Assembly (NCBI GenBank): GCA_044892525.1
Contig: CM097885.1
Location: forward strand, 15,996,001-16,060,000
Direction: 5' to 3'
Length of the DNA: 64,000 bases
DNA from: Schmidtea polychroa
Lineage: Eukaryota
Under the pieces are notes generated by a model. It saw only the letters and a list, made by a program, of their open reading frames with translations, had not been told where the DNA came from and made no database searches. Positions 7,596 to 64,000 of the stretch are shown piece by piece. Numbering within the stretch: position 1 is the first letter of the stretch; each line of letters begins with the position of its first letter. Position numbers and translations under genes: made by a program.

Positions 7596-10500
7596 AATAA
7601 TTTAACATTATACCATTGGTGCATCTAATGCTTTACCGATGTAGAGGAACCACATGCCAATAGTCATACTGATTGCGAAAAATCCAGTCAAATCACCTTC
7701 ATTGCCCTCTTAAACATTACACAAATGCACTCAGTCTTGGACACGTTTCTCGCTATCCCTTCTGAGTAAGCATCCGTTTTGTAGAGCTCCTTTCATTCAT
7801 GTCATCTGATATGTCAGTGTAGGATCTTGTCTGTGTACAAGTTTCCACACCTTCAAATTGAGGATCTAGAAAGGATAAAATCAAATTCCCTCAACTCGTC
7901 ATTAATTCATATTCATACACAAGGTAACACCATAGGTAATACTTAGCTAAATATTTTATGCGAATGATTCTTCCTTTCATAATATTGACGTTTGTAGGCT
8001 ACGGAATAAGTGATATGCAATTATATTTGTATCATTGTTGATAAAACTTGTGGCCCCCATTCCCTCCATTTACCATGTCAGTTACTGTCAAATACTTTAT
8101 TCTGCAATGGCATAAAATCCTTCATTCATTAAACAAATATGGAAGACTAAATAAAATAAGCGTTTCCAAAGCATTTATCACACTGGGCATGGATATAGAT
8201 GAATGCTACTGACACCCTGTGATCTATTCCATCAACTTTTACACATTCGCGATTGTAGGAAGAACTCTTGATAGAAACCCCTAATATGTCACGTCACAAT
8301 GTATCAATGCGTTCGATGACACAACAAAGAACAATGAAAGATGACCACGGCTAATACATACACCCTCCTATTGGATAGAATCAATTAAAATTTCGTGTCA
8401 ATTAGGCATTGCATTGATCACAGATTTCATAAAATTATAGAAAAATTCGTTACAATTTAATTTTTATTGTGTTAATCTAATCCAATTTATCAGTATTGCT
8501 TGGTGCATTTGATATTTTATCATTGCACCTTTGTCACAATAAAATGTGAAAATGTCAATATGGGGCTCACAGGAACCTTGTACACATTAGAAAATGCCTG
8601 ACAAATATTTGTAACCATGACGAGATCATTAGATCAATATATTAGCATTTTTTGAAAATTATTTATTTTTATATTTTGATATAATTTTAATTTGTATTTG
8701 CCGTTAAAAATGTTAAAATTTTAGATTTTGTTATAAAATTGTAATTTAAATAATTTTCTAATATTTAACATAAATGATATTAATAATATTTTGATTTGCG
8801 CTAAAAGCTAAAACACAATATTTATAAAATGTTTGTTTATCTACATCAAAATACACATTATAAATATTGAAATTGTCAACGTCAGAGGAAATAATAAATA
8901 TAATAAGTATGATTTCTGAATGTTGTAAAATGTTGAAATAAATTTATAATTTTGTTATTTTTAGATAAAATGTTTGCAAGCGTATGGGAAATGATGAAGA
9001 GAAAAGAATTTGAATTTGATAATGAAATCAGCAATGAATTGATATGCAGAATTTGCAAATGTTTAATGATAAAAGCTTGCCATGCTCCTTGCGGTTGTCG
9101 CTTTTGTTCTGATTGCATTGAGCAATATTTGGATGGAAAAGATAAATTCTGTCCAGGAGCAGCAAAACATTGTGGAAAGAAAATGATAAATTTCAATAAA
9201 GATGTTTCTGAAGATCATGCAGCCAATTTAAGGATTTCAGAAGTGATAGTGAGATGTCCAATGCAAAATTGTCAATTCAAAGATGAATTAGAAGTGATGG
9301 AGAGCCACATGAGAACATGCAACAAGCAACCAATAAAATGTTTATTCAATAGAATCGGATGCGAAATGAATGAGGTGGTAAAGGATGAAACGAAAGTCCA
9401 TCTCAATGAGAACACTGAAGGCCATAGCAAATTATTGATTGATCAGATCAGTAATTTATGCAATGAAATGCAAGCAATGAGACACGAGAATGTGATATTG
9501 CGCAATGAAATTATCAATATCAATGTAAAATTGTATTTGTAATTAATTTTATTGATATTTGTGATTGTAGGTGAAACTGGGCAATATGGAAAGGAAAGAA
9601 GCGGAGAACAGAGGAGAAATAGAAGAATTGAATGAGGAAATGGTGGCATTGAAGAATGAGAATCACTCATTGAGAATGGAGATGGAGACAAATATTGGAT
9701 CAATCAAAAAAGTTTGATTATTTATTTGATTTGATATTGATATGTTATTGAGGCAAAGCAACTCAGACAGCAAATTGAGGCGATTGAATCAAAATATCAA
9801 TAGCAAATTGATGATATGAAAGATAAATGCGAGCAGCGACTGCAACAGGGGAATGAAAAGGTGATTTATTGATTTATTGAAATATTTGAATTTGAGATTC
9901 AGTTGCAGCTTGAAATGGCGAAATGCGCCAATGAAAAACGTCAGATTGAATCAAAATGTCAACAGCAAATTGATGAGATGAAAGAGAAATGCGAGCAGCG
10001 ACTACAACAGGAGAATAAAAAGGTAATTTATTGATTTATTGAAATATTTGAATTTGAGATTCAGTTGCAGCTTGAAATGGCGAAATGCGCCAATGAAATT
10101 CGGCAGAATGAAACAAAATTAGCAAATGAAAAATATATAAATTATGGATTTTTTGAATGGCAAATCGATAAATTTTCACAACAAAAGAGAAATGAATATA
10201 TTTACAGCGAGGAATTTTATTCCGGGCCAGTCGGTTACAAAATGTGCTTGAGGGTGAGCATTGAGGGTGATTTGGTTTGGCCTGGTTTCTGTTTGATGCG
10301 TGGGGCAAATGATGAGCAATTGGATTGGCCGTTCAATCAATCCGTGACAATCGATGTGATGGATCCAACAAATGGCAACATTTATATGAGCAAGTCAAGG
10401 AAATATTCAGATTTGTCCCGTGATGCCGGATGGGGGGAACCTTCAGATGACAGAAATGATCTAATTGGCATTTATTATTCTATTGGTGATGGCAGCTCAA

Positions 10501-11110
10501 TCTATCAATTAGCAGCCAAAAGTGATAAATTGCTGCTCAGGTGCAGAATTAAAAAATTCTTACAAATTTAAAAAAACATTTCAATAAAGAATTTATTTTG
10601 GGTTTTGATTTGTTTTATTGTTTGTCTTTTTTTATTATATTTATTATATGAGATTATTATTGTGGTAATTATTGCCATTCTCGCCTTCCATCCGATATCA
10701 TCATCACGTGGCGGAGCGCGCACAGCAAATGCCAATTGCAATATCAACATCAATTATATAATTAAATAAAAGCAATTTAATTAAATCAAAAACATTTAAT
10801 ATAAATTAATTTGAATGATTATTATAATTAAATTAATAATTAATTTGAAAGAAATTAAATTAAAATTCACCCGAATATAAGCGCTGACAAATCGCCTCAA
10901 CAAATCAAACGCTCCTATGACGAGTGGAACTGACGAAAAAACCGCCGCTGATGTTATATGAGTTTTGGATAAATTATTGCTGTACTGAATGGCAGTAAAA
11001 TGCACCTAAATGCAATACTAACACTGCGTTATATCAAATTGATAAATGCCTTGAAGTTTCGCCAGCTATTTTTGAGGCATTTAAACGAAAATCCGCAACA
11101 ACAATACTGA
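7596..11110. repeat. Segmental duplication block B, copy 1 (TRAF unit; matches 28587-32125 and in part 48851-51260)
   Basis: Colinear similarity across upstream pseudo-exons, the TRAF gene and downstream sequence. Confidence 0.9.
8970..10571 (+). CDS. TRAF-like protein copy 1 (RING, TRAF zinc fingers, coiled coil, MATH); spliced; one internal exon dead
   Basis: CRIC-x11-CGCRFCSDC RING; CPMQNC...H...C zinc finger; MATH motifs FEWQIDKF, FYSGPVGYKMCLRV, LDWPFNQSVTI, LLLRCRI. Phase-0 GT-AG introns. In-frame TAG at 9801-9803 in an exon whose acceptor AG is also lost. Confidence 0.85.
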
Positions 11111-16454: not shown

Positions 16455-17213
16455 TTAAAAAACCTCTCCGTCGGCGAATACTTCGTCGATATCCACCGGC
16501 AAGCTACGGTCTGCGAGATATTTAATGCCATCGGCCGGTACGACCCGAAATATTTCTTTGGCCGGAATCACGTGGGAGCTTGAAACCTCTTTAAGGGTGG
16601 ACTGGGCCACTGATAATGAAGCCTCCAATGTGGCTATCGCGTCTCTGCGTTTCTGATTCTTGGCGGCCCTAGTTGGCCGTTTTCTTTTACGAGAAGGCGC
16701 CGGATGATTCGCATCGGATGCGGCGGAGGGCGCCACCAACACTGGAGCTAAGATCGGGTCGGAAGAACCACCTACTAAGGGCTGATAACCGGATAATACT
16801 GGAGCGGGAATGGGCGGCAGATAGGAGCCGTGCCCTTGACAATTCGATGTAGATGCTTGCGACGACTGGTGGTGTAGTGGAAACACATTAGTACTGTCTG
16901 AGACGGGAAATTCTCGGACCCTTTTGGCCAATTCTGCCTCCGTATAGACCTTGTGGAGGGCTTCGGATTGCGCTTTAATGGTCAACCGTTGACAACGGCT
17001 CTCCTCCAGCAGGCTATCCCTGCAATGTTCCAACCGGAGTATTTTCTTTCGCTCCTCCTTCATTTGTGGCGGGGAGAACCACGTGCCCTCATAGAGGTCA
17101 ATGCGCTTTTTTAGAGCCCCAATATATAGGTGCAGTTGCGCAATATCCGAGTTCTTGTCTGCGCACGAAAAGCACGGACGAAGTTCTTTAATCGGATTGG
17201 ATTTTGAAGACAT
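16455..17213 (-). CDS. Orphan 252-aa ORF in a retroelement-like island (CxxC, coiled coil, Pro-rich, basic NLS-like segment)
   Basis: Intact ORF, GC-richer than its flanks. LRPCFSCADKN, FSPxQMKE and SEALHKVY are conserved in a diverged copy at about 27050-27340. Confidence 0.55.
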   Translation of the reverse strand: MSSKSNPIKELRPCFSCADKNSDIAQLHLYIGALKKRIDLYEGTWFSPPQMKEERKKILRLEHCRDSLLEESRCQRLTIKAQSEALHKVYTEAELAKRVREFPVSDSTNVFPLHHQSSQASTSNCQGHGSYLPPIPAPVLSGYQPLVGGSSDPILAPVLVAPSAASDANHPAPSRKRKRPTRAAKNQKRRDAIATLEASLSVAQSTLKEVSSSHVIPAKEIFRVVPADGIKYLADRSLPVDIDEVFADGEVF

Positions 17214-24944: not shown

Positions 24945-25674
24945 TATCCAGTCATGGAGAAAACCCTTGGAGGCATATTGCAATAATGAACACGGCTAGA
25001 ACAAGCACTCATAGACACTAGGAAAATCTTCCAATCACCCCTACACCCAGCACAGAAATATCACATGATACTCGATTCAAAGAGAAAGAAAGCAGTAATG
25101 GGTTTCGACCAAAAATTTAGAGCAGTGATTAGAGAAGTATTGCTAGATAAAATATCACAACTGAACTATAGATGAATACCTTATTCAGAGCATTATACAT
25201 TCAACACGCTCCTTAAACTCGAATGACAGGTTTTGTGAGATCATTATTCAAGCTCTTAAATTATACTTTTTATCAACAATTTTATTATAAATTATAATTA
25301 AATTTCAAGGTTTTTTGAATAATATCAGAACTAACACAAGCGAGAGGAAAAAACAATTGCGAAGCAGCACTTTCCTGGCTAAATGGTGATTTATATGCCA
25401 ACATCAAAAAAGCCTCACATTTTTCGAAATTTAGAAAATCATCGATCAGGCTCTTAATAAAATATGGCAAATCTATTAAAATAAAAGAAATCGAAAGTAT
25501 TATACAGCTAGGAATAAAACTTCGCGAGAACTGTAAATACTGCTTCATAGACAATCTCCACCATATCTGAAGAACTTCATAATAAAATAGCTCTAATAAA
25601 TGCAGAGAAATGGCACAGAAATATATGCCAAAGCTATTAGTGAAAGCAGATAATTTGACAGACTCGCAGTTTCT
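24945..25674 (+). pseudogene. Internally deleted second copy of the non-LTR RT remnant
   Basis: Segments match about 5960-6006 and 6549-7190 with deletions. Confidence 0.8.
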
Positions 25675-27049: not shown

Positions 27050-27340
27050 TGATTCAACTATTCTGCGGCCATGCTTCTCATGCGCCGATAAGAATGCCAT
27101 CATTAACACCATGCAGGCTCAGATAGGATTGCTAAAAATGAAATCGGATCATCTAGAGGGAATCTACTTTTCTCCTGCGCAAATGAAGGAGGTACGATTA
27201 AACACTGCCGCGATGGTATGATCGAAGAGAGTCCCTCATTACGGCTATTAATCAAAGAACAATCAGAGGCCCTGCACAAGGTCTACGTGCAAGCGACTAT
27301 TACTAAGAAGATCGCTAATATACCGATAGCGGAGGAAGAT
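27050..27340 (+). pseudogene. Frameshifted homolog of the orphan ORF at 16455-17213
   Basis: LRPCFSCADKN...EGIYFSPAQMKE in one frame and IEES...SEALHKVY in the next. Confidence 0.7.
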
Positions 27341-27677
27341 TCGTGTAAGCAAATGCAACACGATATCATTTTTCATTGTAGATATCAATCCAATCAAACC
27401 AATTCAGAACCCACACAGAAGGAATTCGAAGAAACTCGACAGCAAATCAGAACAAACCAATCCAGAACCCGCACAAAGTGGAAAGGAACCAGGAACGCAA
27501 GGGATAAACAACGGATAATCGAATGGCGCTCAAATCCTCAAGTAATCAATACGATTTATTATTTTCAGTAGATCAATTGGAAAAACTCAAAAGATCAAGA
27601 TCAGTACGACATAAGAGAGAATAGCAACAGCAACAGCAAAAAGGGAAAATGGAGATAACCATAATCAAGAACCAAAA

Positions 27678-28586: not shown

Positions 28587-31500
28587 AATAATTTAACATT
28601 ATGCCATTGCCGCATCTAATGCTTTACTGATCCATCTCAGCCATGTAGAGGAGCCATTGAAAGCTTGGTCACACCGCGTGCCAATACTCATGCTCATTGC
28701 GGAAAATCCAGTCAAATCGCCTTCATTGCCCTCATAAACATTACACAAATGCACTCAGTCTGGGACACATTTCTCGCTATCCGTTCTGATTAAGCTTCCG
28801 TTTTGTACAGCTCCTTTCATGCATGCCATCCGATATGTCAGTGTAGGATCTTGTCTGTGTACAAGTTTCCACACCTTCAAATTGAGGATCTAGAAAGGAT
28901 AAAATCAAATTCCCTCAACTCATCATTAATTCATTTTCATACACAAGGTAACACCATAAGTAATATTTAGCTAAATATTCTATGCGAATGATTCTACCTT
29001 TCCTAATATTGACGTTTGTAGGCTACGGAATAAGTGATATGCAATTATATTTGTGTCATTGTTGATATAACCTGTAGCCCCCCATTCCCTCCATTTACCA
29101 TGTCAGTTAGTGTCAAATACTTTATTCTTTCATGGCATAAAATCCTTCATTCTATAAACAAATATTGAAGACTAAAATAAATAAGCGTTTCCAATGCTAC
29201 TGACGCCCTGTGATCTATTCCATCAACTTTTACACATTCCCTATTGTAGGAAGAACACTTGATAGAAACCCCTAATAAGTCACGTCACAATGTATCAATG
29301 CGTTCGATGACACAACAAAGAACAATGAAAGACCACGACTACTGTGGATTGGCATCAGAATGGTCCTGGCAATTGCTTTGGTGTCCATTAATTGGATTAT
29401 TTTAAAAAAATAAAAAACAAATATCTGATTTGTTGCTGAATCTGCTGTGACCGAATTCTGTGCCATTATTATGTACATCTATCAATACATACACCCTCCC
29501 GCACATCCACTAGCACATGCACCATCACATTCACTAGCACATGCACCATCACATCCACAATCACATGCACTAGGACAGTGAACTACAATACGATTCGATA
29601 GAATCAATTAAAATTGTCAATTAGGCCCTGCATTGATCACAGAATTCATAAATTACACAAAAATTCGTAACAATTTAATTTTTATTGTGTTAAATCTAAT
29701 CAATATCAGATCAATATGTGGCTCACAGGAACCTTGTACACATGAGAAAATGTTAGACAAATATTTGTAACCATAACGAGATCATTAGATCAATATTAAC
29801 ATTTTATGAAAAATATTTATTTTTATATTTTGATATATTTTTAATTTGTATTTGCCGTTAAAAATGTTAAATTTTTACATTTCGTTATAAAATTATAATT
29901 TAAATAATTTTGTAATATTTAAAATAAATGAGAAAAAAATTAGCATTAATAATATTTCGAATTGCTCTGAAGGCTAAAAAACAATATTTATAAAATGTTT
30001 GTTTATCTACATCAAAATACAAATTATAAATATTGAAATTGTCAACGTCAGAGGAAATAATTAATATAATAAGTATGATTTATGAATGTTGTAAAATGTT
30101 GAAATATTTTGATAATTTTGTTAATTTTAGATAAAATGTTTGCAAGCGTATGGGAAATGATGAAGAGGAATAAATTTGAATTTGATAATGAAGTCAGCAG
30201 TGAATTGATATGCAGAATTTGCAAATGTTTAATGATAAAAGCTTGCCATGCTCCTTGCGGTTGTCGCTTTTGTTCTGATTGCATTGAGCAATATTTGGAT
30301 GGAAAAGATAAATTCTGTCCAGGAGCATCAAAACATTGTGGAAAGAAAATGATCAATTTCAAAAAAGATGTTTCTGAAGATCACGCAGCCAATTTAAGGA
30401 TTTCAGAAGTGATAGTGAGATGTCCAATGCAAAATTGTCAATTCAAAGATGAATTAGAGGTGATGGAGAGCCACATGAGAACATGCAACAAGCAACCAAT
30501 GAAATGTCCATTCAATAGAATCGGATGCGAAATGAATGAGGTGGTAAAGGATGAAATGAAAGTCCATCTCAATGAGAACACTGAAGGCCATAGCAAATTA
30601 TTGATCGATCAGATCAGTAATCTATGCAATGAGATGCAAGCAATGAGACACGAGAATGTGACATTGCGTAATGAAATTATCAATATTAATGTAACATTTT
30701 ATTTGTAATTAATTTTATTGATATTTGTGATTGTAGGTGAAACTGGGCAATCTTGAAAGGAAAGAGGCGGAGAACAGAGGAGAAATAGAAGAATTAAATG
30801 AGGAAATGGTGGCATTGAAGAATGAGAATCGCTCATTGAGAATGGAGATGGAGACAAATATTGGATCAATCAATCAAGTTTGATTATTGATTTGATTTAC
30901 TATTGATTTTGTTATTGATGCAAAGCAGGTCAGACAGCAAATTGAAATGAATGAATCAAAATGTCAGCAGCAAATTGATGAGATGAAAGAGAAATGCGAG
31001 CAGCGGCTGCAACAGGGGAATGAAAAGGTGATTTATTGATTTATTAACGTGTTTGAATTTGAGATTCAGCTGCAGCTTGAAATGGCAAAATGCGCCAATG
31101 AAATTCGCCAGATTGAAACAAAATTAGCAAATGAAAAATATATAAATTATGGATTTTTTGAATGGCAAATCTATAAATTTTCACAACAAAAGAGATATGA
31201 AAAAATTTACAGCGAGGCATTTTATTCCGGGCCAATCGGTTACAAAATGTGCTTGAGGGTGAGCATTAGGGGTGATTATGTTTATGCTGGTTTCTGTTTG
31301 ATGCGTGGGGCAAATGATGAGCAATTGGATTGGCCGTTCAATCAATCCGTGACAATCGATGTGATCGATCCAGCAAATGGCAGCATTTATATGAGCAAGT
31401 CAATGAAATATTCAGATCGCCCTGATGCAGCCGGATGGGGGAAACCGTCACAAGACAGAAATAATTCAATTGGCTTTTATTATAATTATCCTGATACCAG

Positions 31501-32125
31501 CTCAATCTATCAATTAGCAGCCAAAAGTGATAAATTGCTGCTCAGGTGCAGAATTGAAAAATTATGACAAATTTAAAAAAACATTTCAATAAAGAATTTA
31601 TTTTGGGTTTTGATTTGTTTTATTGTTTGCATTTTTTATTATATTTTTATTATATTTATTATATGAGATAATTATTGTGGTAATTATTGTCATTCTCGCC
31701 TTCCATCCGATATCATCATCACGTGGCGGAGCGCTCACAGCAAATGCCAATTGCAATATCAACATCAATTATATAATTAAATAAAAGCAATTTAATTAAA
31801 TCAAAAACATTTAATATAAATTAATTTGAATAATTATTATAATTAAATTAATAATTAATTTGAAAGAAATGAAATTAAAATTCACCCGAATATAAGCGCT
31901 GACAAATCGCCTCAACAAATCAAACGCTCCTATGACGAGTGGAACTGACGAGAAAACCGCCGCTGATGTTATATGAGTTGTGGATAAATTATTGCTGTAC
32001 TGAATGGCAGTAAAATGCAGCTAATTGCAATACTAACACCGCGTTATATCAAATTGATAAATGCCTTAACATTTCGCCAGCTATTTGTGAGGCATTTAAA
32101 CGGAAATCAGCAACAACAATACTGA
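28587..32125. repeat. Segmental duplication block B, copy 2
   Basis: Colinear with 7596-11110. Confidence 0.9.
30136..31567 (+). CDS. TRAF-like protein copy 2, apparently intact (4 exons)
   Basis: RING, zinc finger, coiled coil and MATH. Three phase-0 GT-AG introns (GTAACA...TGTAG, GTTTGA...AGCAG, GTGATT...TTCAG). All exons are open when joined. Confidence 0.9.
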
Positions 32126-48850: not shown

Positions 48851-51260
48851 AAATATTTATTTTGATATATTTTTAATTTGTATTTGTCGTTAAAAATGTT
48901 AAAATTTTACATTTCTGTATCAAATTGTAATTTAAATAATTTTGTAATATTTAAAATAAATAAGAAAAAAATTAGCATTAATAATATTTTGAATTGCTCT
49001 AAAAGCTAAAGAACAATATTTATAAAATGTTTGTTTCTCTACTTCAAAATACAAATTATAAATATTGAAATTGTAAACGTCAGAGGAAATAATTAATATA
49101 ATAAGTATGATTATTGAAATGTTGTAAAATGTTGAAATATTTTGATAATTTTGTTAATTTTAGAGTTAATTTTATAGTTTGTTAATTTTATAGTTAAATG
49201 TTGGCAAGCGTATGGGAAATGATGAAGAGGAAAGAATTTGAATTTGATAATGAAATCAGCAGTGAATTGATATGCAGAATTTGCAAATGTTTAATGATAA
49301 AAGCTTGCCATGCTCCTTGCGTTTGTGGCTTTTGTTCTGATTGCATTGAAAATTATTTGGATGGAAAAGATAAATTCTGTCCAGGAGCAGCAAAACATTG
49401 TAGAAAGAAAATGATCAATTTCAATAAAGATGTTTCTGAAGATCATGCAGCTAATTTAAGGATTTCAGAAGTGGTAGTGAGATTCCCAATGCAAAATTGT
49501 CAATTTAAAGATGAATTAGAGGTGATGGAGAGCCACATGAGAACATGCAACAAGCAACCAATAAAATGTTTATTCAATAGAATCGGATGCGAAATGAATG
49601 AGGTGGTAAAGGATGAAATGAAAGTCCATCTCATTGAGAACACTGAAGGCCATAGCAAATTATTGATTGATCAGATCAGTAATTTGTGCAATGAGATGCA
49701 AGCAATGAGAGACGAGAATGTGACATTGTGTAATGAAATTATCAATATCAATGTAAAATTGTATTTGCAATTAATTTTATTGATATTTAGGATTGGAGGT
49801 GAAATTGTGCAATATTGAAAAGAAAGAGACTGAAAACAGAGAAGATATAGAAGAATTGAATGAGGAAATGGTGGCATTGAAGAATGAGAACCGCTCATTG
49901 AGAATGGATATGGAGACAAATATTGGATCAATCAATCAGGTTTGATTATTGATTTGATTTGATATTGATATGTTATTGATGGAAAGCAGGTCAGACAGCA
50001 AATTGAAGTGATTGAATCAAAATGTCAGCAGCAAATTGATGAGATGAAAGAGAAATGCGAGCAGCGGCTGCAACAGGTGAATGAAAAGGTGATTTATTGA
50101 TTTATTGAAATGTTTGAATTTGAGATTCAGTTGCAGCTTGAAATGGCGAAATGTGCCAATGAAATTCGGCGGAATGAAACAAAATGTCAACAGCAAATTG
50201 ATGAGATGAAAGAGAAATACGAGCAGCGGTTGCAACAGGCGAATGAAAAGGTGATTTATTGACATATTTGAATTTGAGATTCAGTTGCAGCTTGAAATGG
50301 CGAAATGTACCTATGAAATTCGGCAGATTGAAACAAAATTAGCAAATGAAAAATATGTAAATTACGGATTTTTTGAATGGGAAATCGATAAATTTTCACA
50401 ACAAAAGAGAAGTAAAAATATTTACAACAAAAGCGTTTTTTTCGGGACTAATCGGTTACAAAATTTGCTTGTGGGTGCTGATTGATGGTAATTGGGGTAT
50501 TGAGGCTGGTTTCTGTTTGGTGCGTGGGGCAAATGATGAGCAATTGGATTGGCCGTTCAATCAATCCGTGACAATCGATGTGATCGATCCAGCAAATGGC
50601 AACATTTATATGAGGAAGTCAATGAAATATTCAGATAGCCCTCTTGATGCAGCTGGATGGAGGAAACCTTCACACGACAGAAATAATTCAATTGGTATTT
50701 ATTATTATCCTGATGCCAGCTCAATCTATAAATTAGCAGCCAAAAGTAATAAATTGCTGCTCAGGAGCAGAATTGAAAAATTATGACAAATTTAAAAAAA
50801 CATTTATATAAAAAATTGATTTATTTTGGGTTTTGATTTGTTTTATTATTTGCCTTTTTATTATAGCAAATTGCCGATTGCAATATCAATAATATTGCAA
50901 AATCAAAAATATTTAATATAAATAATTATTTTAATTAAATTAATAATTAATTTGAAATTAAATTTAAATTCACCCGATTATAAGCGCTGACAAATCGCCT
51001 CAACAAATCAAACGCTCCTATGACGAGTGAAACCGACGAGAAAACCGCCGCTGATGTTATATGAGTTTTGGAGAAATTATTGTTGCATTGAATGGCAATA
51101 AAATGCACTTAAATGCAATACTAAAACTGTTATATCAAATTGATAAATGCCTTAACATTTCACTAGCTATTTCTGAGGCATTTAAACGGAAATCCGCAAC
51201 AGCAATGCTGACAAAATGTTCGAAAATTGCTTTCACATCTGTTTGGGTAGTAATTGTATT
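48851..51260. repeat. Segmental duplication block B, copy 3 (partial)
   Basis: Colinear with about 8660-11110 and 29813-32160. Confidence 0.88.
49198..50786 (+). pseudogene. TRAF-like protein copy 3, frameshifted in the MATH domain
   Basis: Same exon layout. An extra A at about 50428-50432 splits MATH into ORFs 50285-50485 and 50373-50786. Zinc-finger Cys is changed to Phe (RFPMQNC). The frameshift could be a homopolymer sequencing error. Confidence 0.8.
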
Positions 51261-56287: not shown

Positions 56288-56771
56288 NNNNNNNNNNNNN
56301 NNNNNNNNNNNNNNNNNNNNNNNNNNNNNNNNNNNNNNNNNNNNNNNNNNNNNNNNNNNNNNNNNNNNNNNNNNNNNNNNNNNNNNNNNNNNNNNNNNNN
56401 NNNNNNNNNNNNNNNNNNNNNNNNNNNNNNNNNNNNNNNNNNNNNNNNNNNNNNNNNNNNNNNNNNNNNNNNNNNNNNNNNNNNNNNNNNNNNNNNNNNN
56501 NNNNNNNNNNNNNNNNNNNNNNNNNNNNNNNNNNNNNNNNNNNNNNNNNNNNNNNNNNNNNNNNNNNNNNNNNNNNNNNNNNNNNNNNNNNNNNNNNNNN
56601 NNNNNNNNNNNNNNNNNNNNNNNNNNNNNNNNNNNNNNNNNNNNNNNNNNNNNNNNNNNNNNNNNNNNNNNNNNNNNNNNNNNNNNNNNNNNNNNNNNNN
56701 NNNNNNNNNNNNNNNNNNNNNNNNNNNNNNNNNNNNNNNNNNNNNNNNNNNNNNNNNNNNNNNNNNNNNNN

Positions 56772-57630
56772 GGGATTTATTCGGTTTCTTTTTCTATCGC
56801 GTCTGTGTGCGCGGTCTGGTTAGACCGAATATTGTTGGTGTGCGCACACAGACGCGAGCAATGGATTGTTGTTTGGAAGTAGGTTTTGATGTAATTTTTT
56901 ATTGAATTGATTTTTGATGTATTTTAATTAGAAATTCGAGATTTGAATGGATTGTTTTGTGGTTTAAAAAAGGTAAAATTCTGGAAGGGAGGAAACCAGT
57001 TTTGTTTATTGAAATAAGTTTTGGAATCGAAATGTTTGAAGAAGAAGATGTTGATTACAAATTTATTAAAGCTTATGATGTTCCAAACCAAGATCTTATT
57101 TCTTATTTCGATGAAACCCGTGAATTCATTGAAAATGGCAGAAAATTTGGTGGAGTATTGGTTCACTGTCTTGCTGGAAGATCAAGAAGTGGAATTATTT
57201 TGACGGCTTATTTAATGAAACATTTTAAAGTTGGTCCAAACGATGCGATTGAGACAATTAAGGAAAAGTCATTTATATGTCCAAATGATGGATTCATGAA
57301 ACAATTAAAGATATATTTCAACATGAATTGCAGTGATGAAATCAACAAATGCGCAAATACAGTTTCTCAAGCTCAATTTAAGTTATCAGCATCTTCAAAA
57401 GATTTAGTTCAATTCAAATGTAGAAAGTGTCGATTTTTATTATTCGACAATTCAAGTGTTGTTGAGCACAGTAAAATGAAAGCTTCGAAAGCAATAAATG
57501 AAAGCACAATTTGCAATGAGGAAATACTTATCGAAGCTCTTCCTTGGATTGATAGCAGCAATGCAGACGGGGAAATGAAAATGACAGTGTTAAAGAATAA
57601 AATTTTAATGATTTATTTGGATCTTATTCA
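56772..57630 (+). repeat. 5' LTR (visible part; about 894 bp predicted, start in gap near 56737)
   Basis: Ends in ...TTATTCA directly before the PBS; AATAAA at 57596-57601; repeated at 61186-61242 plus 62385-63131. Confidence 0.85.
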
Positions 57631-60600
57631 TGGTAGCAGAGCGTGGTTCCGGCTAGCCAGCCGGAACAAGGTAATAGATGATTATATAATGTATTTTTTG
57701 TATTTACGTGATTATTTTGTGAATTATTTTATGAATTATAATATGTGTTATATTTTTATTGTTGAAACATTTCCCCTAGGGCCTGCCCTCCCTAACCCCA
57801 TTAGAGGTGGATTGGCGCGGGTATTTGTCAAAATAATAACAGGGAAGACAATTACTCTCGAAGTTGAATCTAGTGACACGATAGAAAATGTTAATGCGAA
57901 AATACAAGATAAAGAGGGTAGTCCACCTGACCAGCAACGATTAATTTGCGCGGGAAAACCATTAGAAGATGAGCGAACATTATCTGATTATAATATTCAA
58001 AAGGAGTCTACTTTGCGTTTAGTTTTGCGATTGAGGGGTGGAATGCAAATATTCGTGAAGACACTGACAGGAAAAACAATAACTTTGGAAGTAGAATCAA
58101 GTGATACTATTGAGAATGTAAAGGCTAAAATTCAAGAAAAAGAAGGGATACCCCCAGGGCGACAAAGACTTAATTTTGCCGGGAAAGTATTAAAAGATGG
58201 CCTAACGTTGTTAGATTATAACGTTAGGAAAGAAGCCACGGTACATCTGGTTTTGGGGCTGGCAGGGGGAAGTCCAGTATCAGATGCGGAGTTCGAGGCG
58301 GGGTACAAGAGACGAACCGGGTGGAAGATTTCGTTAGGGCGTCTACGTAACCGGGCCTTAGGAGATGGATCGGACCCTGGGGAAGATCAAAGGAGAATGG
58401 AAGCTTACGAAGATATGTATGAGGAAGTCATAAACGAATTGGAGGACCTGAGGAATAATGCTCGGGAGTTAGGGCGGGAGAAAGAAGAAAAGGAAATTGA
58501 GGCAGATCTGAAACGGTTAGAAGCGGATTTCAGCAGAATCGGCGATCTGGTCCTCACGCAGAAGGAAGAGAGTTTTAGAGTAGAGTCGCGGAAGGGCACA
58601 GAAAAATCATTTAGGAGCGAAGAGCCCAATGAGAAACAGAAGTGCATAATGGGTTTGAAACCCTTGCAGCTGCCGATCTTTAATGGAAAGGTAATAGAAT
58701 ATCCTGGATGGAGGGCAATTGTGAGAGCCTGCATCGAGGACACGGATGAGCCGAGTGAAAGAAAGTACTTGTACCTGAGACAGTACTTGGAAGGGAAGCC
58801 GCTGCAATTAATTGCCTATATTGGATATGGCTCGCAGGCTTTCGAGGCGGCGATAAAATTACTTGATGAAAGGTATGGGGGACCAGAAAGATCCTATTCC
58901 ATGATGCTGGATGCGGTGCAGAGGTTCTTCCCAGTGAGGCTCAACGTCTTGGAGGACCTAGAGCGGTTTGAAGAGCTGCTAGGAAACCTCATCCTGAATT
59001 TCAAGGATCAGAAGAGGGAAGGCGAGTTAAACAACGGGATGTTGTATCACCAACTGCTGAAGAAGCTGCCAGAGACCATGCTGATTCAGTGGTCACGCCA
59101 TTGTGATTCGGGGAGAGAGGGAAATGTGCAAACGCTAGCCGAGTGGATCAAAACGGAAGCTAATAGGCATCGGCAAGCAATGAGCATTCTGTTTGGAGAA
59201 GGGCGGGCAAAAGGTAGAACTGTCGCCCCAACAACTAACTTCGGAAATGCGAATAGGGGCACGAAGTTAACGGATAGTAGGCGCAAGATAGAGGTTAGCA
59301 GTGCTCGAAAAAAGGAACCAATTTGTGTGAAATGTGGTTCAGAACATTATTTAAATCAATGCTCAGAGTTCCTAAAGCTGACTGTTAAGGAACGAAATGA
59401 GTTTGTGACCAAGAAGCGGCTTTGTTACAATTGTCTTACAACAGCTCACATGGTTAGAGAATGCGAAAAACCGAGCTTTTGTAAGGACAGAGATTGTACT
59501 CGAAAGCATCACAATTTGCTCCATGGCTCAGAGAACAAAGTTGATGGAGATCAAGAGCCGAGCAATGAGAACACATCAATGATGACGGTTCAAGATACAC
59601 AGAGGAAGAAGATGTATGTTCCTTTACGAACGATTACAGCAAAGTTGATTAATAAAGGAAAGGCGGTCAAGATCAACGCATTGCTAGACGACGCTAGCAA
59701 TGTTAGCTATATTAGCGATTGGGCGGCGCAAGAACTGGGGTTGGGAGGACAGTGGCAAAGCACTCCAGTTGGCGTGATTGGTGGACAATCACAAATGTTG
59801 GAAACGAAGCCCGTGACGCTATTATTGGCAAGCAACAATAACAATTTAAAGGTAAATTTGAACGTCCTGGTGGTAAAAAAGGTCACTGGAGACCTGGGAA
59901 TGTGTAACTGGAGGAAGTTATCGGCGAAATGGAAGCATCTGCGATATATAAACTTCCCGGTTATGAATACAAGGACGCAGATTGATGTATTGATTGGTTC
60001 TGATTACCCATATCTACATCGATCTATTTGCGAAGTAACAGGAGCAAAGCATGAACCAATTGCAAGGTTGACGCCCCTCGGATGGACATGTCTTGGTAGG
60101 ATTGCAAGAAATCAAGCTCCAAGATGTTCGCATTTGGCTCAGAGTTATTTTGCGGTAACGGAAATGTTAAACGACGGAGAAATGATTATTCATGATGTAG
60201 ATAATTCTGAAGAAATGGATTATATTAAAGAATGGGATGAAAACGATGAAACACATGAAAACAAAAAGGCTAGCGAAGATGGAGATAGGGAAAGCAATGA
60301 ATGTGAGAATTTACAATCTAGCGATATTATAAATCAAGATGGAATAGAGCAAAATCGAGTCAATGAGAACGAGAATAATTATTCTGAATTTGTAAAAAGT
60401 AATACTGAACTATTAGGCAAAGCTTTTGATAAAGGAGACCAAGTTACAGCAGATGAGTTAGAAAATATTGTCAAAAGTCACAATCAAGAAGAAAATTTTG
60501 AAAGTAAATATGATGAAACTGAAGTAGATGTGTCAGACAAGAATGAAAATTATAATAGTCATGTAGGCACAGAGGTTGTCGACATTAATGTTATCGAAAG

Positions 60601-61105
60601 ACCGAATTCTTTGGTAGAAGATAATTTTCAAAACATGGAAGACGTAGTTAATGTTCAAACGGATTCTGCTTCTTCAGAAAATCATTTAGAAACTGATCGA
60701 ATTATGCCAGATTCTGAGAGCAATGACAGTGATCTTAGAGTCGATATTGGTAAAGATCATACATCCGACACAGCTAAAGATTCTGAACAAAATACATTCA
60801 CTCAACCAACGTCTGCTTTAGATGATATCATTGAAGACTATTCACCTGGTTCCCCTTTATTAAATGAGATGCAACAGGGAAAAGTGGGGACTATTGAATT
60901 GGTGAAACATGCAGGAAGGATAATGGAGATATTGCAGCGAAACAGAATGAAAAGTGGCAGGGGCTTGGTCGAGTATGGCGATGGTGGGAGGAGAATCCAC
61001 CATGATGTATCCAGAAAAGTGCGTGGTGCGGTGGCCTTTACCATAGCAAGATGGGTGTGTGAGGGGTATTGGAGAGAGGCAAAAGGAAAGGTTCCCCTGA
61101 AGTAA
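56957..61105 (+). CDS. 1382-aa ORF: DUSP12-like phosphatase - ubiquitin - ubiquitin - Bel/Pao Gag - aspartic protease - acidic tail
   Basis: Uninterrupted frame in the ORF track; domains recognised by motif (see sub-features). The start codon is non-ATG (GTG), so the true initiation site is uncertain. Confidence 0.8.
57020..57577 (+). other. DUSP12: DUSP12/YVH1-like dual-specificity phosphatase domain plus partial C-terminal zinc-binding domain, inside the 5' LTR
   Basis: AYD general acid; [10 protein letters not shown] (57161-57190); [10 protein letters not shown]; [11 protein letters not shown]...H...C...IEALPW. Truncated before the final CPKC/CSCG ligands. Confidence 0.8.
57631..57649 (+). 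promoter_or_regulatory. Primer-binding site complementary to initiator tRNA-Met
   Basis: TGGTAGCAGAGCGTGGTTC immediately after the LTR-terminal CA; matches the known TGGTAGCAGAG iMet-type PBS. Confidence 0.85.
57815..58270 (+). other. Head-to-tail di-ubiquitin (Ub1 57815-58042, Ub2 58043-58270)
   Basis: Two 76-aa units: [25 protein letters not shown]...LRLRGG and [18 protein letters not shown]...LGLAGG; preceded by IRGG. Confidence 0.95.
58271..60120 (+). other. Bel/Pao Gag and aspartic protease domains
   Basis: [14 protein letters not shown]...[11 protein letters not shown]; knuckles CVKC..H....C, CYNC....H....C and C....C...H....H (59324-59523); [12 protein letters not shown] (Asp at 59687); IDVLIGSDY; [11 protein letters not shown]. 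Confidence 0.9.
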
Positions 61106-61133
61106 TTGGGTGGTTGATCCGCTAGAAGGGATC

Positions 61134-61147
61134 AAGGAGGGGGGAAA
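61134..61147 (+). promoter_or_regulatory. Polypurine tract
   Basis: AAGGAGGGGGGAAA immediately before the LTR-initial TG at 61148. Confidence 0.85.
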
Positions 61148-61242
61148 TGTTTCGACCAGTCAGAGGGGGATTGCCTCTGACTGGCATTTATTCGGTTTCT
61201 TTTTCTATCGCGTCTGTGTGCGCGGTCTGGTTAGACCGAATA

Positions 61243-62382
61243 CACCCGTTTCCACATGTTAAAAGTCTTTATAATACATGTTGGTGTGTTCATCTATCGA
61301 TGACTCACCATTTATGAGAATGTTTATTTCATTTTTTCATTCTCAATTCAATTTTATTTATGGTTTTAGAAGTAAGTTTTTTAAATTTAAGTATATTTTA
61401 AGGCTTGAATTTTGATTTCATATAATTATGAGATCATTATTCAAGCTCTTAAATATTACTTGTAATCAGCATTTATAATATATTTATAATATATTGATAA
61501 TTAAATTTCAGGTGCTTTTTTAGGTATTTTATGATATGTTATGAATTTGGAATTATTTCAATAAAATGTAAGTTATATATATTTTTAACTAAAAAGAAAT
61601 AAAATAATCACCAAAAACATTTATTTTTTTAAGAAATAATGGTTCCAATCGATTTTTTGGAGATTCCCAGTAATCTTCCAAAATCTTTATAATTTTCTCC
61701 ATTTTCATATGGATGGATGAGACGGATTTTGTCATTTTCTGAAATTCTTTGAAAATATTATTTTTTTTTTAGTTATTAAAATTTACGATTTTCGAATTTT
61801 TTTCTTCAATTCCAAAAATGTCGATGGAACTTGTTGAATATCTTCACACAAAGGCGTTTGACTAGAAATATCTGATATGCTGTAAAATATTTTAATTATT
61901 TGTAATTAAATAAAAAAATTCTTACATTGTCAGATCTTCACCTTCGCAAAATGGAAATGTCTCCAAAGAAATATCTGAAAATCTAAAGAAATATTAACTT
62001 CAAAAATATTTTATAAATAGATCTTACGATGTTTTGTCGTCCATTTCTCAAAAACTCAAAGTTGAGTTGTCAGATTCAAAATCCAAATTTTTTTCAGCCA
62101 TGAATTTTAATAATTTTAAATTAATGATATGTTAACAGTATGTTAATGACTCTCTACTTTCGGAACAAAAAAAGCTATATTAAATTTGCGTGTATTTTAT
62201 ATTATGTGTCCTGTGTTTGTATGTAAAATTATTTTTCTGTCACTTTCTCAATTCCTATAATAAAACTTTCTACATTCGGAACATTAAATTTTTGCACACA
62301 GGTAAGTTTGTGTGTTGCTATAATATAATTTTATCGATTTTTTTTTTAGATTATAGAAACTCTTATATTGTGGAAACGGGTG
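61243..62382 (-). mobile_element. Non-autonomous Tc1/mariner-type element
   Basis: 14-bp TIR CACCCGTTTCCACA / TGTGGAAACGGGTG; TA duplication (61241-61242 and 62383-62384); HTH-like remnant ISENDKIRLIHPYENGENYKDFGRLLGISKKSIGTII on the minus strand at about 61635-61750. Confidence 0.85.
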
Positions 62383-62509
62383 TATTGTTGGTGTGCGCAC
62401 ACAGACGCGAGCAATGGATTGTTGTTTGGAAGTAGGTTTTGATGTAATTTTTTATTGAATTGATTTTTGATGTATTTTAATTAGAAATTCGAGATTTGAA
62501 TGGATTGTT

Positions 62510-63131
62510 TTGTGGTTTAAAAAAGGTAAAATTCTGGAAGGGAGGAAACCAGTTTTGTTTATTGAAATAAGTTTTGGAATCGAAATGTTTGAAGAAGAAG
62601 ATGTTGATTACAAATTTATTAAAGCTTATGATGTTCCAAACCAAGATCTTATTTCTTATTTCGATGAAACCCGTGAATTCATTGAAAATGGCAGAAAATT
62701 TGGTGGAGTATTGGTTCACTGTCTTGCTGGAAGATCAAGAAGTGGAACTATTTTGACGGCTTATTTAATGAAACATTTTAAAGTTGGTCCAAACGATGCG
62801 ATTGAGACAATTAAGGAAAAGTCATTTATATGTCCAAATGATGGATTCATGAAACAATTAAAGATATATTTCAACATGAATTGCAGTGATGAAATCAACA
62901 AATGCGCAAATACAGTTTCTCAAGCTCAATTTAAGTTATCAGCATCTTCAAAAGATTTAGTTCAATTCAAATGTAGAAAGTGTCGATTTTTATTATTCGA
63001 CAATTCAAGTGTTGTTGAGCACAGTAAAATGAAAGCTTCGAAAGCAATAAATGAAAGCACAATTTGCAATGAGGAAATACTTATCGAAGCTCTTCCTTGG
63101 ATTGATAGCAGCAATGCAGACGGGGAAATGA
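62510..63131 (+). CDS. DUSP12: Second DUSP12-like copy, inside the 3' LTR (runs into gap)
   Basis: Translation identical to the 5' copy except SGIIL versus SGTIL. Confidence 0.75.
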
Positions 63132-64000
63132 NNNNNNNNNNNNNNNNNNNNNNNNNNNNNNNNNNNNNNNNNNNNNNNNNNNNNNNNNNNNNNNNNNNNN
63201 NNNNNNNNNNNNNNNNNNNNNNNNNNNNNNNNNNNNNNNNNNNNNNNNNNNNNNNNNNNNNNNNNNNNNNNNNNNNNNNNNNNNNNNNNNNNNNNNNNNN
63301 NNNNNNNNNNNNNNNNNNNNNNNNNNNNNNNNNNNNNNNNNNNNNNNNTTATATTTTAAACAATTTAAATATTATTTGGAATATTTTATAAGATACAATA
63401 ATATGAGTTATTTCATTTTATTCATATTTGTTTGTGTGCTAAATTTCATCTTTTTACAAAAACATTTTCTCAATAATAAACTATTGTTTAGATTATATTA
63501 TATGAAAGCGAAACAATTTTTTATTTCTCTTTCATCTGTAACAATAAAGTTAATTTCGACCAAATTATATTAATTATTAATTAAAATTATTTTTTTCAAT
63601 TTATTTAATTTGTTCTTTCCATTTGCTATACTCATGGCCTCGATAATGTAAGTTGATGTGATAAAGCTGTATTTATCTTATTAAATTTGCATTCATTTAA
63701 ACAAACTACCTGATGAGACATAAAATGGACAAAATCATTGTACTAAGTACTAGTCCAGCTTGCTGGAATGCTTTAGGCAATGCCAAAGCTCTAGAGCCAA
63801 CGATGAGATTGAATACAAAGATGCATCCGGTCTGTAACAGAAAGAAAACTCTTCATAAAACCAAAAATAAATGATGCGTAACAAACCCATCTGGAATAAG
63901 TGGCTGTCGGCATTTCAATTTATTTTTATTTCGAATATTAATCTAGTCTAAAAAATAAATTTTTGTAAAGTCTTCATTAATAAAATCCTGCTGATTTATA

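Follow-up and report, generated by a model that had tools for sequence, protein, structure and literature searches.

A pol-less Bel/Pao-type element in Schmidtea polychroa with a truncated DUSP12/YVH1 fragment inside its long terminal repeats, in frame with ubiquitin, Gag and protease

A Bel/Pao-type element between two assembly gaps

The 64,000-nucleotide stretch of Schmidtea polychroa DNA analysed here (assembly GCA_044892525.1, contig CM097885.1, positions 15,996,001 to 16,060,000 of the forward strand; this whole stretch is called the window, and positions are counted from its first letter) contains a pol-less Bel/Pao-type retroelement. Both long terminal repeats (LTRs) of the element hold a truncated fragment of a DUSP12/YVH1-type phosphatase gene, and the fragment is in frame with a ubiquitin-Gag-protease coding region (Table 1). 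The element fills the contig 56772-63131, which sits between two runs of N and begins and ends with the same repeat sequence. That repeat aligns in two parts, 56772-56831 with 61183-61242 and 56830-57578 with 62383-63131, with a single mismatch in each part, that is 2 differences in 809 shared bases (0.25% divergence). Counting the two pieces apart (95 + 799 bp), the LTR is 894 bp long.

The inner borders of the repeat are those of an LTR. The 3' copy begins with TG immediately behind a polypurine tract, and the 5' copy ends in CA (57629-57630), directly followed by TGGTAGCAGAGC, the start of a primer-binding site (PBS) of the initiator-Met tRNA type. This 12-mer is the beginning of a printed antisense probe for Drosophila tRNAiMet (PMC4506996) and the PBS of the GalEa/CoRex1 copia elements, complementary to the 3' end of tRNAMet (PMC3587641); the PBS assignment is a comparison of the window's own 12-mer with printed literature sequences, not with the host's own tRNA. 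Between the two LTR copies lies an internal region of 3517 bp (57631-61147). The outer termini and any target-site duplication fall within the N gaps, only the inner borders being visible. We conclude that the repeat is the LTR of a Bel/Pao-type element. The original prediction had described a repeat of about 894 bp with a purine tract and TG at one border and CA and an initiator-Met PBS at the other, and had assigned it to Bel/Pao; length and borders are borne out, as is the assignment, through a DUF1759 Gag, CCHC knuckles and a protease motif common to the relatives described below.

The LTR itself is a mosaic. Its first ~130 bp are GC-rich and fold into a strong hairpin; the other ~760 bp are AT-rich and host-like and include the 528-bp DUSP12/YVH1-type fragment. 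In the 3' LTR a nested, non-autonomous DNA transposon of 1140 bp occupies the loop region of this hairpin. It is found in that copy only and was inserted after the LTR repeat had formed. The transposon is AT-rich with no recognisable transposase, and a 95-bp stretch of it resembles 25233-25316 of the window (77% identity).

Both contig ends lie inside an LTR and are flanked by N gaps, which is typical of repeat-induced breaks and would fit an assembly artefact, either reads of several family members joined into a chimera or a tandem or circular form that was collapsed, instead of one insertion with two LTRs. We consider such an artefact very improbable: two substitutions separate the copies, as does the 1140-bp nested insertion flanked by its TA duplication, which speaks against a single sequence having been read two times. 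Were the assembly chimeric, the junctions of polypurine tract with TG and of CA with PBS would still identify the phosphatase-bearing repeat as the LTR of the family. No other Bel/Pao pieces were found in the window, and exact-protein look-ups (of the element's open reading frame and of the phosphatase relative P0001, below) and exact DNA scans of metagenome contigs returned no further copies.

A DUSP12/YVH1 fragment in both LTRs

Each LTR holds 528 bp of uninterrupted DUSP12/YVH1-type coding sequence, 176 codons without a stop. The fragment is 78% identical at the protein level to residues 43-235 of P0001, a protein of 282 amino acids (UniParc UPI00060C9713), which was its sole close relative in an exhaustive HMMER search of 1.84 billion representatives (3.8e-92; the next match reached 1.6e-27 at 35% identity). 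The best solved-structure match of P0001 is yeast YVH1, spanning the C-terminal half of the DSP domain and the zinc domain; therefore the source gene of the fragment is of the DUSP12/YVH1 type. The fragment contains the HCLAGRSRS loop and the general-acid Asp, and it keeps all the columns that are invariant in a 46-sequence family alignment (the acid Asp and the H-C-x-x-G-x-S-R-S loop). Its two copies differ by a single I/T exchange, from T/C at 57195/62748.

The domain around this active site is incomplete. The Pfam DSPc match (E=7e-21) covers profile positions 37-131 of 133 only, and the fragment lacks three parts of P0001, namely residues 1-42, the 17 inner residues 137-153 and the final 47 residues, which form the later Cys-rich half of the zinc domain; tblastn found no match to any of these missing parts in the whole 64-kb window. 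An AlphaFold model built on the 46-sequence alignment has a predicted local distance difference test score (pLDDT) above 90 for residues 11-100, with no beta-sheet called there and a poor zinc part. DSP domains have 140-160 residues, of which the model superposes on 87-100 columns only, with a template-modelling (TM) score of 0.55-0.63 by target length, so that ~60% of solved DSP domains is covered. Two strands and one helix of the fold are gone. The DUSP12/YVH1 piece is thus a fragment, with an intact active-site motif in an incomplete domain. The original prediction had read it as a captured phosphatase. The features which it listed, namely the HCLAGRSRS loop, the acid Asp, part of a YVH1-type zinc domain and one amino-acid difference between the copies, are all confirmed, but what they belong to is a piece of the gene, P0001 residues 43-235 of 282. 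The possibility that the piece belongs to a resident host DUSP12 gene with flanking exons was rejected, as tblastn of P0001 on the whole window matches the two LTR copies only and no DUSP12 exons lie outside the two repeats. We also looked for remnants of the DSP N-terminus upstream of the ATG at 57032, where HMMER gives a weak extension to DUSP19 and P0001 has no significant match; we leave these as not shown.

LTRs are regenerated during reverse transcription. The presence of the fragment in both LTRs therefore implies that it was copied through reverse transcription at least once, as the original prediction had proposed when it spoke of a retrotransposition cycle.

One explanation of these data is that the LTR carries a functional accessory phosphatase at the service of the element, which might for instance change stress signalling in the host or the maturation of 60S ribosomes. 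In its favour, the fragment has retained the HCx5R loop, the acid Asp and every invariant column of the family, the 176 codons are free of stops despite 22% divergence from the nearest relative, and the model is confident (pLDDT above 90) for the retained catalytic part. However, the fold has lost its first 42 residues, the match extends over only about 60% of solved DSP domains, and the model forms no sheet. The zinc domain is short of its last 47 residues, among them the later Cys ligands, and the 17-residue inner piece is lacking as well. Moreover, it is the zinc domain and not catalysis that Yvh1 needs for its ribosome role, and no other element with a close DSP domain was found among the 1.84 billion representatives. 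Because fold elements and half of the zinc domain are missing, the piece is probably no active enzyme; we put little faith in an active phosphatase, and a functional accessory enzyme appears improbable.

A single reading frame and relatives with ubiquitin before Gag

The fragment of the 5' LTR does not end in the LTR. It opens a frame of 1382 codons free of stops and frameshifts, in which the first ATG (57032) stands four codons ahead of the DSP homology and is followed by DSP fragment, linker, two ubiquitin units, Gag, protease, acidic segment and short tail. The linker comprises the terminal 59 bp of the LTR, the PBS, whose translation is GSRAWF, and an AT-rich leader. The ubiquitin part (Pfam E=2e-53) consists of two units, in which the ubiquitin fold ends in Gly-Gly and the downstream protein follows directly, and the second unit (58043) begins with its own Met. 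This arrangement does not agree with the comparison to HIV nef made in the original prediction: the fragment is not a separate 3' open reading frame overlapping U3, and in the 5' LTR it opens the 1382-codon frame into ubiquitin, Gag and protease.

The likeness of Gag-protease to its relatives fades at ~60100-60260, and the position which the reverse transcriptase (RT), RNase H and integrase occupy in the relatives is taken here by an acidic low-complexity segment, which has 0 stops in its frame against 15 and 41 in the other two and no homologue, Pfam match or PDB match. No trace of RT, RNase H or integrase (RVT_1, the Peptidase_A17 region, Integrase_H2C2/rve, DUF5641) was detected in the element, either with Pfam or by tblastn with 50 relatives. 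This is one large loss or replacement. Since these enzymes are absent, the element is a non-autonomous Bel/Pao derivative, not a complete member, and any copying must therefore rely on the proteins of an autonomous relative. The original prediction had not remarked on this lack, and the recent mobility of which it spoke can therefore only be mobility in trans.

The composition of the frame is also a mosaic. GC content at third codon positions (GC3) is 0.25 in the DSP piece, 0.26 and 0.33 in the ubiquitin units and 0.22 in the acidic segment, against 0.51 in both Gag-protease and the C-terminal tail; the host TRAF-like exons of the window have a GC3 of 0.34-0.38, and the GC content of the whole window is 0.31. 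By this measure the DSP piece, the ubiquitins and the acidic segment look host-derived, and the Gag-protease core looks foreign to the genome.

The closest relatives of the element are full Bel/Pao polyproteins, 35-37% identical to it, with RVT_1, the Pao Peptidase_A17 region, integrase domains and DUF5641. The protease motif ALLDDAS/ALLDDGS is common to the window element and to all 31 of the 31 aligned relatives. Ubiquitin stands directly before Gag in each of the four closest relatives, P0003, P0004 (encoded at L001), P0005 and P0006 (encoded at L002, where the ubiquitin frame is broken once by a frameshift). The C-terminal Gly-Gly of ubiquitin is kept in the window element and in all four, with variable residues ahead of it (LRGG, LAGG, LLGG, LQGG, LKGG). 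Ubiquitin before Gag is thus a trait of this Bel/Pao lineage, and the arrangement may be undescribed. None of these relatives has a DSP domain. In P0004, a 41-residue HSP90 fragment (Pfam E=5e-8; residues 22-62, L001:221-343) stands just before ubiquitin and supplies the first in-frame ATG; the slot has thus received host sequence in a second, independent case. Neither the lineage trait nor this HSP90 piece had been noticed in the original prediction. Upstream of the HSP90 fragment the frame of L001 is closed by an AT-rich leader. An AT-rich block in L001, followed by a C-rich run ahead of the coding part, is similar to the AT-rich 109-nt stretch in the leader of the window element (57671-57779). 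P0003 and P0005 carry long open N-terminal extensions before ubiquitin. That of P0003, otherwise unrelated, contains GSRAWF (residues ~58-66) 100 residues before its ubiquitin, and because GSRAWF is the translation of the window element's PBS, the P0003 frame probably crosses the same PBS in the same frame. Two further candidates were dropped: a DnaJ fragment at the N-terminus of P0003, for which there is no Pfam match even at E up to 5, and 'GSR' in P0006 as a mark of the PBS, as the L002 DNA shows this 'GSR' to be ubiquitin sequence in a different frame.

These data bear on whether the DSP piece is translated at all. The piece could be neutral filler, lying in U3 or in an untranslated leader, with translation starting at the ATG of the second ubiquitin (58043) and the open frame owed to chance and youth. 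In agreement with this, the copy is very young (2/809 LTR differences), the second ubiquitin has its own Met, several out-of-frame ATGs precede 57032 in the LTR, and in L001 the leader closes the frame upstream of the host fragment. However, the 83 AT-rich linker codons between the end of the DSP homology and the first ubiquitin contain 0 stops, compared with 12 and 8 in the other frames (shuffle p = 0.0012), and the open extensions of P0003 and P0005 likewise argue against an untranslated leader. On balance, we regard neutral filler as unlikely, while giving it real weight.

The fragment could also act at the RNA level, through small RNAs against the host DUSP12 transcript or as host sequence which shields the element from silencing, much as has been proposed for pieces of piRNA-pathway genes in Drosophila telomeric retrotransposons. 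Retrotransposon-captured host fragments of 76-95% identity, with small-RNA targeting of the host gene, have been described (PMC13534243), and here too both ends of the element carry such a piece. Nevertheless, DUSP12 is not a gene of the silencing pathway, and the fragment, whose protein is 78% identical to that of the nearest known relative, may match too poorly at the nucleotide level, as almost no targeting was seen at ~79-82% identity (PMC13534243). Such a mechanism moreover has no need of a preserved reading frame, and we hold it to be highly unlikely.

The remainder of the window contains three tandem TRAF-like paralogues with RING, TRAF zinc finger and MATH exons (8952-10571, 30109-31567 and 49198-50786), whose only database relative is one protein at 57% identity, so that the collections searched do not contain the proteome of the host. 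The open reading frames 16455-17213 (minus strand) and 27218-27571 (plus strand) have a similar stretch (including ...SEALHKVY...) and are probably another repeat family; the former, within a GC-rich island (0.43), was the one scanned with Pfam and gave no match.

Table 1. Features of the element and of the adjoining gaps, with the ubiquitin positions of its relatives
Feature	Position	Strand	Remarks
Assembly gap	56288-56771	.	N run; covers the first ~35 bp of the 5' LTR plus its left junction
5' LTR, visible part	56772-57630	+	LTR positions ~36-894; ends in CA
Strong hairpin in GC-rich LTR start	56796-56858	+	Fold of 56772-56880: -40.9 kcal/mol, z = -4.5, 0/200 shuffles as good
Single uninterrupted reading frame	57032-61105	+	1357 codons plus stop from first ATG; open from 56918; listed as ORF 56957-61105, 1382 aa
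DUSP12/YVH1-type fragment, 5' LTR copy	57044-57571	+	DSP catalytic part ~57041-57319; first half of zinc domain ~57335-57571
PBS, initiator-Met tRNA type	57631-57648	+	In-frame translation GSRAWF
Two ubiquitin units directly before Gag	57821-58270	+	57821-58042 ends LRGG; 58043-58270 ends LAGG
Gag and Bel/Pao-type protease	58271-60100	+	DUF1759 58679-59101; two CCHC knuckles; ALLDDAS motif
Acidic low-complexity segment	60101-60860	+	~253 codons; in position of relatives' RT-RNase H-integrase
C-terminal tail, stop codon	60861-61105	+	Element-like composition, GC3 0.51
Polypurine tract adjoining 3' LTR	61124-61147	+	Purine run, then TG at 61148
3' LTR, visible part	61148-63131	+	Begins TG; holds nested element; outer end inside gap
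Nested non-autonomous DNA transposon	61243-62382	.	1140 bp; imperfect ~33-nt terminal inverted repeats; TA both sides; only in 3' LTR
DUSP12/YVH1-type fragment, 3' LTR copy	62597-63124	+	One amino-acid difference from 5' copy
Assembly gap	63132-63348	.	N run; covers last ~51 bp of 3' LTR and right junction
Ubiquitin before Gag in relatives	L001:371-583; L002:1-540		Also in proteins P0003 and P0005

A proposed N-terminal passenger and its counterparts in known systems

A unifying model of these observations, which we somewhat favour, is that of a young, pol-less Bel/Pao element whose host fragment lies in R/U5 and is translated as a tolerated N-terminal passenger, clipped off at the Gly-Gly of ubiquitin. 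In this model, the host-like part of the LTR would be R/U5, with the genomic RNA beginning upstream of the ATG at 57032; the AATAAA at 57596-57601, 29 nt ahead of the end of the 5' LTR, would agree with a very short U5 behind a long R. The polyprotein would start with the DSP fragment and continue through the linker made of LTR end, PBS and leader to the two ubiquitins, Gag and the protease. Host deubiquitinases would presumably cut after the ubiquitin Gly-Gly and free Gag from everything upstream. Gag release by such a cut would make the slot tolerant of assorted host peptides, DUSP12 here and HSP90 in a relative, and the phosphatase piece would be one such passenger.

Several points weigh against this proposal. 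Should the fragment lie in U3, its 5' copy would be outside the RNA leader and the open frame would be meaningless. A single copy is seen, and with LTRs that have diverged by 0.25%, youth may account for part of the open frame. The leader contains an AT-rich GT...AG stretch of 109 nt (57671-57779) which looks like an intron; since 109 is not divisible by three, its removal by splicing would soon terminate the DSP frame and disconnect the DSP piece from ubiquitin-Gag. Cleavage after the LAGG, LLGG, LQGG or LKGG ends of ubiquitin is an assumption. Finally, the retention of all catalytic and invariant DSP residues, with no stops despite 22% protein divergence from P0001, could point to selection on the fragment. 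In a variant of the model, ubiquitin would again be a host-cleaved adaptor and the LTR/leader an open slot for expressed host peptides, and the DUSP12 piece, whose catalytic loop is complete and whose zinc domain has lost its end, would be under selection as an accessory product released in fusion with ubiquitin. It might, for instance, trap substrates or compete with the host protein. We consider this variant unlikely.

Plants and transforming retroviruses offer well-known cases of gene-fragment capture by LTR retroelements; in invertebrate elements, to our knowledge, such capture has rarely been documented. The present fragment stands apart from the known captures by its place within the LTR, ahead of the PBS, and by its in-frame connection to Gag through ubiquitin; no report of a capture with this position and frame was found. 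If the frame is used, a retroelement would have here a simple way of testing novel N-terminal proteins while leaving Gag intact, since ubiquitin brings with it a site that the host cuts. If it is unused, the element is still a clean case, open to dating, of host DNA that passed through reverse transcription within an LTR.

Bel/Pao elements (Belpaoviridae), including the 'Flow' group of cnidarians and planarians, likewise have LTRs, a PBS, a polypurine tract, a DUF1759 Gag, CCHC knuckles and the protease motif, and the survey describing them mentions neither ubiquitin nor captured genes other than env (PMC3118150). The window element differs from them in being without RT, RNase H and integrase, in having ubiquitin before Gag and in carrying a host fragment in its LTR. 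A full-text search of the open-access literature, which is a weak negative, found no reports of host capture by animal Bel/Pao elements, of Bel/Pao with ubiquitin or of a retrotransposon with a DUSP.

Maize Bs1 and similar plant LTR elements transduce gene fragments. In orchids, a Ty3/Gypsy element acquired an ALKB domain, and the fixation of extra domains in LTR retrotransposons has been called rare (PMC9289625). As in the window element, a non-autonomous element carries a piece of a cellular gene within its borders and propagates it by reverse transcription; in Bs1-type transduction and in the orchid case, however, the host sequence is internal, whereas the window element has it within the LTR, in frame with Gag.

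Replication-defective transforming retroviruses make Gag-host fusion proteins, have lost pol and depend on a helper. Host coding sequence in frame with Gag, the loss of pol and the need for a helper are all shared with the window element. In the retroviruses, the host part comes after Gag and replaces internal genes, in contrast to its place here before Gag, in the LTR, with ubiquitin between the two and a truncated domain. Coding sequence within LTR DNA is itself familiar from sag of mouse mammary tumour virus (MMTV) and nef of HIV, which are separate 3' open reading frames in U3 with mRNAs of their own. The frame of the window element starts in the 5' LTR and runs into gag, and is in this respect closer to Ty1, where the Gag start codon lies in the 5' LTR.

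Drosophila telomeric retrotransposons also carry host fragments, at ~76-95% identity, and in TART the fragment is present at both ends, one end being copied from the other (PMC13534243). They differ in being non-LTR elements, in the size and source of the fragments (140-235 bp, from silencing genes) and in the mechanism proposed, which acts at the RNA level.

For the ubiquitin part, we found no description of ubiquitin ahead of a retroelement Gag in the literature searched. Natural ubiquitin fusions which deubiquitinases cut are the ubiquitin-ribosomal protein precursors and polyubiquitin, and ubiquitin insertions occur in the polyproteins of cytopathic pestiviruses. These precursors share with the window element a unit ending in Gly-Gly which another protein follows directly, giving a host-made cleavage site that is, in the window element, a predicted one. 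They differ in that the residues before the Gly-Gly vary in the window element and its relatives.

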